Shown here piece by piece: positions 3,528 to 4,977 of a DNA stretch of 64,000 bases. The stretch covers positions 248,001-312,000 of the forward strand of contig NW_020843837.1 in assembly GCF_003704095.1 (NCBI RefSeq), given 5' to 3'. The DNA comes from Pocillopora damicornis (taxonomy: Eukaryota). The notes under the pieces are model-generated. The model was given only the letters and a program-made list of their open reading frames with translations. It was not told where the DNA came from and did no database searches. Position 1 is the stretch's first letter; every line of letters starts with the position of its first letter. The translations under genes and the position numbers were made by a program.

Positions 3528-4977
3528 CTACAGTCTCGCTTTGTACTTCTCCAGCCAGCTTTGCACCTCTGTTATTTTGTAATTGTACGGACCCGTTCCC
3601 CCTTCGTATACTATTTTTCCATCTTGTATAATGAACAGTCTCTCGGGCCACGCGCCATAAGCTTTCGAAGCTTCGTTCTCAAACGCATCGACCATGATTG
3701 GAACAGAGCATCGACTTGATTTTTTCAACATTTCCGCCGCAGCAAGACGATCTTCTAAACTCTTGTGTTGAGGGATTTCGACATTATTCTGTGGGAATAG
3801 AGAAAAAATATCACCGGAAATCAAGCCTACACTAGGTTTTATTTGAATGGCATCACAACATGATTCAGTAAACAATTGCAAAAGTTAGAATGACAAATCA
3901 ACGCTACTTTCTCCTTAAGGCTTTGAGTGAGCTGCTTTTACAATTCTGTGATTCGTTTGACCTCGACCGAGTCTTCCTCGGCTTTATCGGTTGATCGCTT
4001 CATCGTAAAATTATGCATGCAACAGAAATTAAAGTATCTCATTACTATTCTACAAACTGACTTAATCACGTGTTTTGGTTTGATTGCCTCGGGCATATGA
4101 GCATTACGTTTTATTTTTCTCGATAAATGATGATTACATAAAAGCTATTCAAGTCCTGTCATCCTGAAATTCTTTCCCTCGAGGAAGGGAATCCGACCAT
4201 AACGTAAAGTTGGCGAACCGAACCTTCGAAAATGTTTTCAATCAAATCAGTGACTGTTTATACACACAGGAAAACAAAAATTTTCCTGAATTATGAAACT
4301 TTCTAGAGAGCCATTCTTTTTCTGCTGAAGTAGCGGCTTGTCAATAATCAATGAGGTTGAATATTAGAAATGGCTGGATATTCAAGATGAGTCGTAAGAA
4401 CCTGAATAACAGGTGCGCTACAAAAGAGGAACGCATCAACTTTTACTCCTTAAGTAAACTACTGCATAAACACGCGATCAAAAAACAAATACAAACTTAC
4501 ATTCCAGCGCCAGCCATCGGTTGGATGAGCCTCGAGGATGTAAACAGTAAGGAAATCCACTTCGTCGTCATAATCATGAACAACTTTGGCGAAGTTGTTC
4601 AGAAAGTTAATGAAAAATGGGGGTCAGCTACAGCTGCCAAAATTCAGAACCAGTGGGCGCGTGCCTTTAGCGAAATCCAGTAGCCTGCACTCTTTACCAT
4701 CAGTTGAAATAAGCCGGCAATTTGGTGCTAGATTACCCAAGCGGGCAGTCTTGTTCACATCTCCTAACATTATCTTTAAGACGCATCCGAGCATTTTCTT
4801 TCCGCCGTATTCATCCCAAAAATTTTGGTAAGGTACCAGAAGATTGCGCTCTTCGAATTTCTGGATGCGTTCTTTGACATAGGGAATGGAGGAGCCGATT
4901 CTCAACAATATGACCAGAATTGTGGCTTGTAGAGCTGTTAAGCTCAGCAAGATGTTATGGCCCAACTCGGCCAACAT
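3528..4977 (-). CDS. DIO: Iodothyronine deiodinase-like selenoprotein A, 245 aa; exons 4977-4501 and 3788-3528; Sec (TGA) at 4626-4624, codon 118
   Basis: N-terminal hydrophobic anchor; RPLVLNFGSCS-TGA-PPF; the frame continues to YILEAHPTDGWRWN; phase-0 gtaagt...cag intron; exon 2 NNVEIPQHKSLEDRLAAA...AYGAWPERLFII...YEGGTGPYNY. AAAATG start context; SECIS downstream. Confidence 0.95.

Follow-up and report, generated by a model that had tools for sequence, protein, structure and literature searches.

A Conserved Hairpin Follows the Selenocysteine UGA in Coral Deiodinase-Like mRNAs and May Assist Its Decoding

Introduction

The mRNA hairpin that follows the selenocysteine (Sec) codon in two coral genes raises the question of whether it is kept because it acts in the RNA or arises as a by-product of the protein encoded there. 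The genes, here called A and B, lie in a 64,000-nucleotide stretch of the Pocillopora damicornis genome (the window; NCBI RefSeq assembly GCF_003704095.1, contig NW_020843837.1, positions 248,001 to 312,000 of the forward strand). Judged by their sequences, both are deiodinase-like selenoprotein genes, each with one TGA at the catalytic position of a match to Pfam PF00837 (T4_deiodinase; 114.7 bits for gene A and 119.3 bits for gene B, cut-off 27). A sequence-only reading of the window had pointed to a hairpin at the same offset from the UGA in both genes and suggested that it might be an undescribed recoding or pausing element. We found the hairpin to be conserved in the sense RNA of three coral clades, and mRNA structure after the catalytic codon to be in excess in Sec genes, not in their cysteine (Cys) paralogues. 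With moderate confidence, we read the hairpin as the conserved top of a structured mRNA stretch after the Sec UGA, kept by selection and acting like a Sec redefinition element (SRE).

An SRE is a stem-loop that closely follows a Sec UGA on its 3' side, lowers termination and raises Sec insertion. Such elements are mentioned for SELENON, SELENOT, SELENOP, SELENOS, SPS2 and 'some other' selenoproteins (PMC8704476, PMC1440920, PMC5727441, PMC3628699, PMC6844570, PMC4561486).

Results

Genes A and B Share a Hairpin in the Same Register

The mRNA of gene A reads UGAACAACUU-CGCCA-AAGUUGUUCA at 4601-4577, a stem with a 5-nt loop that spans the codons L-N-N-F-A-K-V-V-H and leaves 22 nt between the UGA and the stem. 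Gene B reads GAACGACUU-CACCA-AAGUCGUUC at 15754-15732, over the codons K-N-D-F-T-K-V-V-R. Here 23 nt separate UGA and stem, and the register is that of gene A (Table 1). In a 39-nt context each hairpin is the minimum-free-energy fold. That of gene A has -11.3 kcal/mol (z -4.9), with none of 200 dinucleotide shuffles as stable, and that of gene B has -14.7 kcal/mol (z -3.3), with 2 of 200 as stable. A 100-nt fold of gene A adds a lower stem beneath the hairpin. The positions, pairing, shared register and minimum-free-energy folds all agree with the sequence-only reading.

That reading had also drawn attention to an A-U pair of gene A that is G-C in gene B, and to the divergence of the codons between UGA and stem. 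Both points hold. AAC becomes GAC (Asn to Asp) on one side of the pair and GTT becomes GTC, a synonymous change, on the other, and seven of the eight intervening codons differ between the two genes. Taken alone, this single compensatory change is weak evidence, as one of its sides alters the amino acid and just two sequences are compared.

The Pairing Is Conserved in the Sense RNA of Three Coral Clades

The piece of gene A that lies 5' of the TGA has 48 homologous products, most of which stop at the UGA or have a W there. They fall into three clades, A, B and X; one homologue is from Oculina patagonica. Scanning metagenome contigs, with alignment of the pre-TGA pieces, gave 80 loci, all carrying the active-site motif, and 27 of these form the A/B/X group. 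None of the 23 intact A/B/X rows has lost the TGA. For the pairing analysis we aligned 22 distinct sequences from the three clades, namely genes A and B and 20 locus rows. The pseudogene-like rows L031 and L055 are included, as is L043. L038, whose contig is too short, and the exact duplicates L021, L025, L027, L035, L041, L042 and L044 are omitted.

Standard base pairs occupy 196 of the 198 stem cells in this alignment. When the 3' partner was slid by one to three columns as a control, only 23-63% of cells paired. Pairing fails in two cells: L043 has a His codon there, and L032 a synonymous CTA at the closing pair. Two pairs changed on both sides. The pair of alignment columns 43 and 57 is GC in 12 rows, AU in 8 and GU in 2, and that of columns 45 and 55 is CG in 16, UA in 5 and UG in 1, so that each two-sided change has its wobble form in other rows. 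Supplied with no structure, RNAalifold returned the identical nine pairs from the 22 sequences together with a 3-bp extension. Pairing is conserved with compensatory changes, although the independent events are few.

G-U wobble pairs are frequent in the stem. As a G-U pair would be a C-A mismatch on the opposite strand, it is the sense RNA that is constrained. The letters of loop columns 48-52 differ among rows (CGCCA, CACCA, CGGCA, UACAA, CUCUA and UGCAA, among others), and the stem has no bulge. Two other origins were considered and rejected: a DNA palindrome or antisense element is ruled out by the many G-U pairs, which are workable only in sense RNA, and for a repeat or transposon no further copy turned up besides the paralogues.

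Synonymous sites were also surveyed. The loop codon is free, and third positions vary where a wobble is compatible with pairing (Asn C or U opposite G, Lys A or G opposite U). The valine codon at +15 is GTT in all 23 rows, and GUU is needed there for pairing with A. We counted parsimony changes on a tree built without the hairpin codons, leaving out L031, L044, L055, L038, L027 and L043. On this tree the 25 conserved fourfold-degenerate columns have a mean of 3.5 changes. Val+15 alone among them has none, and the single change at Val+14 is coupled to its pairing partner. L031, L044 and L055, being pseudogene-like, are left out of the 23 rows and of the codon usage.

These three loci (L031:698-805, L044 and L055:94-201) have upstream stops and read Y-S instead of P-P behind the TGA, yet they keep all nine stem pairs. 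RNAalifold drew a further 5-bp hairpin (GGCAG...CUG.CC) at 4622-4638 in gene A and 15776-15792 in gene B, minus strand, which pairs the U and the G of the Sec UGA. Most of this small hairpin is dictated by the G-S-C/Y-S-U codons, and C-G to U-G changes occur in 9 of 22 rows. Members of the A clade (loci L019-L028; proteins P0004-P0025) mostly have Tyr or Phe, not Cys, two residues before Sec, reading S-Y-S-U or S-F-T-U where genes A and B read S-C-S-U; a Cys close to Sec is not universal in the clade.

Excess Structure Goes with Sec Genes and Not with Cys Paralogues

Searching the 234-Mb assembly with PF00837 uncovered nine deiodinase-like genes, arranged in clusters (contigs C2576, C3164, C3129 and C472). 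The catalytic position is TGA in four of them (A, B, L005 and L008) and a Cys codon in five (L001, L002, L003, L007 and L010). These nine genes and the 80 loci yielded 66 distinct sequences, of which 40 have TGA and 26 have Cys. For the 90 nt that follow the catalytic codon, fold energy was set against 100 synonymous-codon permutations that keep both the protein and its codon usage.

In this downstream stretch the mean z was -2.14 for Sec genes (n=40) and +0.42 for Cys genes (n=26), with a Mann-Whitney p of 3e-10 computed on rows that are not independent. Two 90-nt windows upstream of the codon gave -0.05 and -0.07 for Sec and 0.12 and -0.15 for Cys. A stricter null, in which permutation was confined to the 30 downstream codons, gave -1.73 for Sec (38 of 40 negative) and +0.24 for Cys (9 of 26 negative). 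When each lineage was reduced to one mean, the 14 Sec and 5 Cys lineages still differed (p=0.0012). Relative to the expectation from synonymous shuffles, pairing probability in the Sec clades is in excess from +12 to +60 nt, with a dip at the loop; by the same measure Cys genes have no excess in that interval. The excess structure thus goes with UGA genes and with the downstream location, not with the Cys paralogues. One to three independent switches between Sec and Cys are supported.

Other Sec Clades Have Longer Hairpins Nearer the UGA

Hairpins of 19-27 bp follow the UGA in other Sec clades. In a coral clade that resembles L008 (five sequences), 10 nt separate the UGA from a conserved hairpin of about 24 pairs. 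A divergent Sec group of seven marine eukaryote sequences has a 19-pair hairpin, also starting 10 nt after the UGA, and its apex stem lies at codons homologous to the A/B apex (D-F-x-K-V). Compensatory changes were found in three pairs of the L008-like clade and four pairs of the divergent group. These alignments suggest that the A/B hairpin is the conserved tip of a post-UGA helix found throughout the family, the lower part of which is in no conserved register in the A/B/X clade.

The post-UGA hairpin of L008 itself is very stable (-36.5 kcal/mol in 100 nt). The L081 contig, from a eukaryote, has eukaryote-type matches resembling the Rfam SECIS_1 model for the Sec insertion sequence (SECIS) at 824-891, 1205-1266 and 4277-4341 around a Sec deiodinase-like gene (34.2 bits versus a gathering score of 35), and L087, a 1.7-kb contig, carries two tandem Sec copies, at 342 and 1406. 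L081 and L087 suggest that tandem arrays occur outside corals too.

Gene A Is Transcribed and Spliced as Modelled

Spliced contigs linking 4501 to 3788 on the minus strand, across an intron with GT..AG ends, were found in all four RNA or RNA-like runs, which come from four studies, and in all four the contigs span both the UGA and the hairpin of gene A. Gene A is transcribed and spliced as modelled. Several of the runs that contain it carry a coral metagenome label. Among the RNA contigs there is no variant within 4577-4601, and the exon-1 differences, at 4645, 4688, 4747, 4927 and 5036, are too few to weigh. Candidate SECIS-like elements with an ACGA-AUGA ... GA pattern follow both genes, recognized by motif and fold. 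The Rfam SECIS_1 model has no match in the window at its gathering score and none at E<=5 in 1-17000, so that both stem-loops escape it even at that threshold.

Table 1. Positions of the gene A and gene B features in the window.
Feature	Position	Strand	Description
Gene A Sec codon (in-frame TGA)	4624..4626	-	Motif NFGSCS-U-PPFF; one TGA inside the PF00837 match
Gene A hairpin	4577..4601	-	5' arm 4601-4592, loop 4591-4587 (CGCCA), 3' arm 4586-4577; perfect 10-bp stem
Region of excess base-pairing, gene A clade	about 4566..4614	-	+12 to +60 nt, counted from the T of TGA; conserved hairpin at the apex
Gene A exon 1	4501..4977	-	Met at 4977 to GT splice donor after 4501
Gene A exon 2	3528..3788	-	Acceptor at 3788 to stop codon 3530-3528
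Gene A SECIS-like element (candidate)	about 3290..3362	-	ACGA-AUGA ... GA; AUGA starts at 3350, ~178 nt past the stop; motif and fold
Gene B Sec codon (in-frame TGA)	15778..15780	-	Inside the PF00837 match
Gene B hairpin	15732..15754	-	5' arm 15754-15746, loop 15745-15741 (CACCA), 3' arm 15740-15732; 9 bp
Gene B exon 1 (predicted)	15655..16182	-	First Met at 16182 to GT donor after 15655
Gene B SECIS-like element (candidate)	about 11525..11601	-	ACGA-AUGA ... GA; AUGA starts at 11589; motif and fold; 3' region

Discussion

A Possible Role in UGA Decoding

Genes A and B have a stem-loop 3' of the Sec UGA, by their own folds and by RNAalifold on the 22 sequences. If it acts like an SRE, the hairpin would be kept by selection as sense-strand RNA. 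A stable helix near the ribosome's mRNA entrance could disfavour termination or slow the ribosome at or just after the UGA, and the resulting delay would let the SECIS machinery of the 3' untranslated region (UTR) bring Sec-tRNA. We infer such an effect on decoding from the conservation of the hairpin and from the Sec/Cys contrast. The suggestion that the hairpin is a recoding or pausing element stands in part: the hairpin is conserved and the excess structure follows UGA, not Cys, codons, but the conserved stem lies farther from the UGA than in known SREs.

Several points weigh against the SRE-like reading, the distance among them. The conserved stem starts 22-23 nt after the UGA, or 18 nt with the 3-bp extension, where a start within about 10 nt would be expected of an SRE, and the pairing nearer the UGA in the A/B/X clade (from about +12) is in no conserved register. 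At this distance the A/B stem could touch a ribosome with the UGA in its A site only if the weaker pairing beneath the stem forms. By the geometry of the ribosome footprint, a helix at 22 nt meets the entrance channel once the ribosome is about 3-4 codons past the UGA, so a pausing or mRNA-stability role is conceivable.

The Sec/Cys contrast has exceptions on both sides. Under the strict null, gene A reaches only z -1.31 (12% of shuffles as stable) and gene B only z -1.74 (6.5%). Three Sec loci (L081, L082 and L090) and the fragment L095 have little or no excess in one or both nulls, and two Cys genes, L007 and L010, each fall to a z of about -1.8 to -1.9 in one of the nulls. On a tree that left out L095, L031 and L055, the best topology needs three switches between Sec and Cys, of which well-supported branches force one. 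The contrast therefore comes from few independent events, and an independent-pairs test on the tree, with too few Sec/Cys contrasts to draw on, gave no significance. The pairing test is likewise supportive, not decisive. Its count of pairs changed on both sides (two) was equalled by 346 of 500 shuffles, and related sequences may exceed shuffles in such a control even without any structure.

Weighing the Alternatives

The coding sequence itself accounts for much of the hairpin. Most of the stem follows from the motif N-[ND]-F-x-K-[VI]-V, which nearly forces it because AAY and GAY codons are complementary to GUN codons. With the codon usage of the family, 2-13% of synonymous renderings (mean 9%) yield all nine pairs, and the informative synonymous sites number only 2-3 per sequence. 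The invariance of Val+15 is weak alone, since GTT is the commonest Val codon (44%) and, wherever Val occurs in columns -29 (16/16) and +34 (12/12), its codon is GTT as well. Short-range inverted repeats of at least 10 nt number 23 in the window, that of gene A (I20) being one of them. Given this repeat count and the rate among synonymous renderings, one gene, or the A/B pair alone, is unconvincing, and the signal lies in the conservation among 22 distinct sequences and in the Sec/Cys contrast. These facts, like the shuffle count above, are what would be expected if the hairpin were a by-product of a conserved helix-forming protein motif and a preference for GTT, with no function at the RNA level. 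We nevertheless consider a pure by-product unlikely. Shuffles that preserve the protein still leave the Sec genes over-structured, downstream only, and do not leave the Cys paralogues so. The changes that did occur preserve pairing, including the paths through GC, GU and AU and through CG, UG and UA, and clades that differ in protein have different yet co-located hairpins.

Selection on the RNA need not concern the UGA. The structure could slow elongation some codons after Sec for folding or membrane insertion, protect the UGA-bearing mRNA from nonsense-mediated decay, influence splicing of the intron 76 nt downstream or bind a protein, and conservation with sense-strand wobble pairs would be expected for any of these. 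The 22-23 nt spacing, which places the helix at the ribosome entrance only some codons past the UGA, would suit such a role, as would the position of the UGA 123 nt upstream of the exon junction. In vertebrates a stop so far upstream of a junction would invite decay upon termination. Against such roles, the loop letters are unconserved beyond those fixed by codons, so there is no obvious protein-binding motif; the helix base of the sister Sec clades, 10 nt from the UGA, fits action at the UGA; and the Cys paralogues share the fold without the structure, which argues against a part in folding. A function of this kind is likewise unlikely in our estimation. Far less credible is a decaying relic, in which a long ancestral post-UGA hairpin, possibly derived from a bacterial-type in-frame SECIS, is eroding and its tip survives through protein constraint. 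The longer hairpins with the same apex position in other clades fit that history, as does the A/B/X clade, which retains only the tip in conserved register, and a descent of SREs from bacterial SECIS has been proposed for SPS genes (PMC4561486). However, the A/B/X clades exceed protein-preserving shuffles (z about -1.1 to -2.3) and the compensatory changes arose inside the A/B/X clade, and this excess together with the changes within the clade points to continuing selection.

Comparison with Known Elements

The spacing between UGA and helix is 6 nt in SELENON, 8 nt in SELENOT and 9 nt in SELENOS SL1 (PMC1440920, PMC3628699). The 10 nt of the sister clades fits this range, and the 18-23 nt of A/B does not unless the lower pairing forms. 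Like the coral hairpin, the SRE of SELENON (SEPN1) is a phylogenetically conserved coding stem-loop 3' of the Sec UGA and is accessory to a SECIS in the 3' UTR (PMC8704476, PMC3628699, PMC6844570). Its helix lies 6 nt after the UGA, versus 22-23 nt (18 nt with the extension) in the coral genes, which belong to another gene family. The SELENOT hairpin was likewise a comparative find, made with EvoFold, and is a conserved coding hairpin after the UGA of a selenoprotein with a thioredoxin fold, but it is long, starts 8 nt after the UGA and is conserved across vertebrates (PMC1440920). For the SPS2 SRE and the hymenopteran readthrough element, UGA and non-UGA homologues were compared within one family, as here, and the authors too propose descent from a bacterial SECIS; the structure there adjoins or overlaps the UGA and the family is another (PMC4561486). 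SELENOP SRE1-3 and SELENOS SL1 are UGA-proximal, SL1 lying 9 nt after its UGA, and raise Sec insertion in reporters. They differ from the coral hairpin in that SL1 is in the 3' UTR and the SELENOP elements overlap or directly follow their UGAs (PMC5727441, PMC3628699).

The bacterial SECIS resembles the coral element as an in-frame hairpin shortly after the UGA, with a sequence shaped jointly by protein and structure. It differs in having a conserved loop G/U and a bulged U bound by SelB, whereas the 5-nt coral loop varies apart from its codon-fixed letters (PMC8704476). The coral genes also differ from genes with a bacterial SECIS in their candidate eukaryote-type SECIS-like elements in the 3' UTR. 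A bacterial-type SECIS was rejected as an identity for the hairpin, the loop being unconserved and the stem without a bulge.

Significance

The longer hairpins of the sister clades raise a broader proposal, which we put forward as doubtful: an ancient, family-wide post-UGA hairpin of Sec deiodinase-like genes, with its apex fixed at D/N-F-x-K-V, that was re-shaped in each lineage and lost after conversion to Cys, the motif being partly shaped by the RNA. If true, such a hairpin would serve deiodinases in general as an accessory recoding signal, possibly of bacterial-type in-frame SECIS descent, and would predict the efficiency of Sec decoding in deiodinases, perhaps in vertebrate enzymes too. 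A full-text literature search, whose scope did not extend to the founding SRE papers or to supplements, found no description of an SRE-like element in a deiodinase; the element may be undescribed in this family.

To our knowledge, SREs are known from a handful of selenoprotein mRNAs, mostly vertebrate, few of them functionally tested. A coral genome with four UGA and five Cys paralogues of one enzyme is a natural experiment in this respect, and extra post-catalytic structure only in the UGA copies supports the view that such helices serve UGA decoding. In these genes 2-3 synonymous changes make or break the stem. The coral genes escape ordinary gene callers, and the products in databases end at the UGA or show W in its place.

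Other Features of the Window

Other weak Rfam matches in the window (Xist_exon1, CRISPR-DR7 and others) lie far below their gathering scores and were taken as chance. A large inverted repeat at 63081-63243, with 74-nt arms that are 86% complementary and 15 nt between them, is unrelated to the deiodinase genes.

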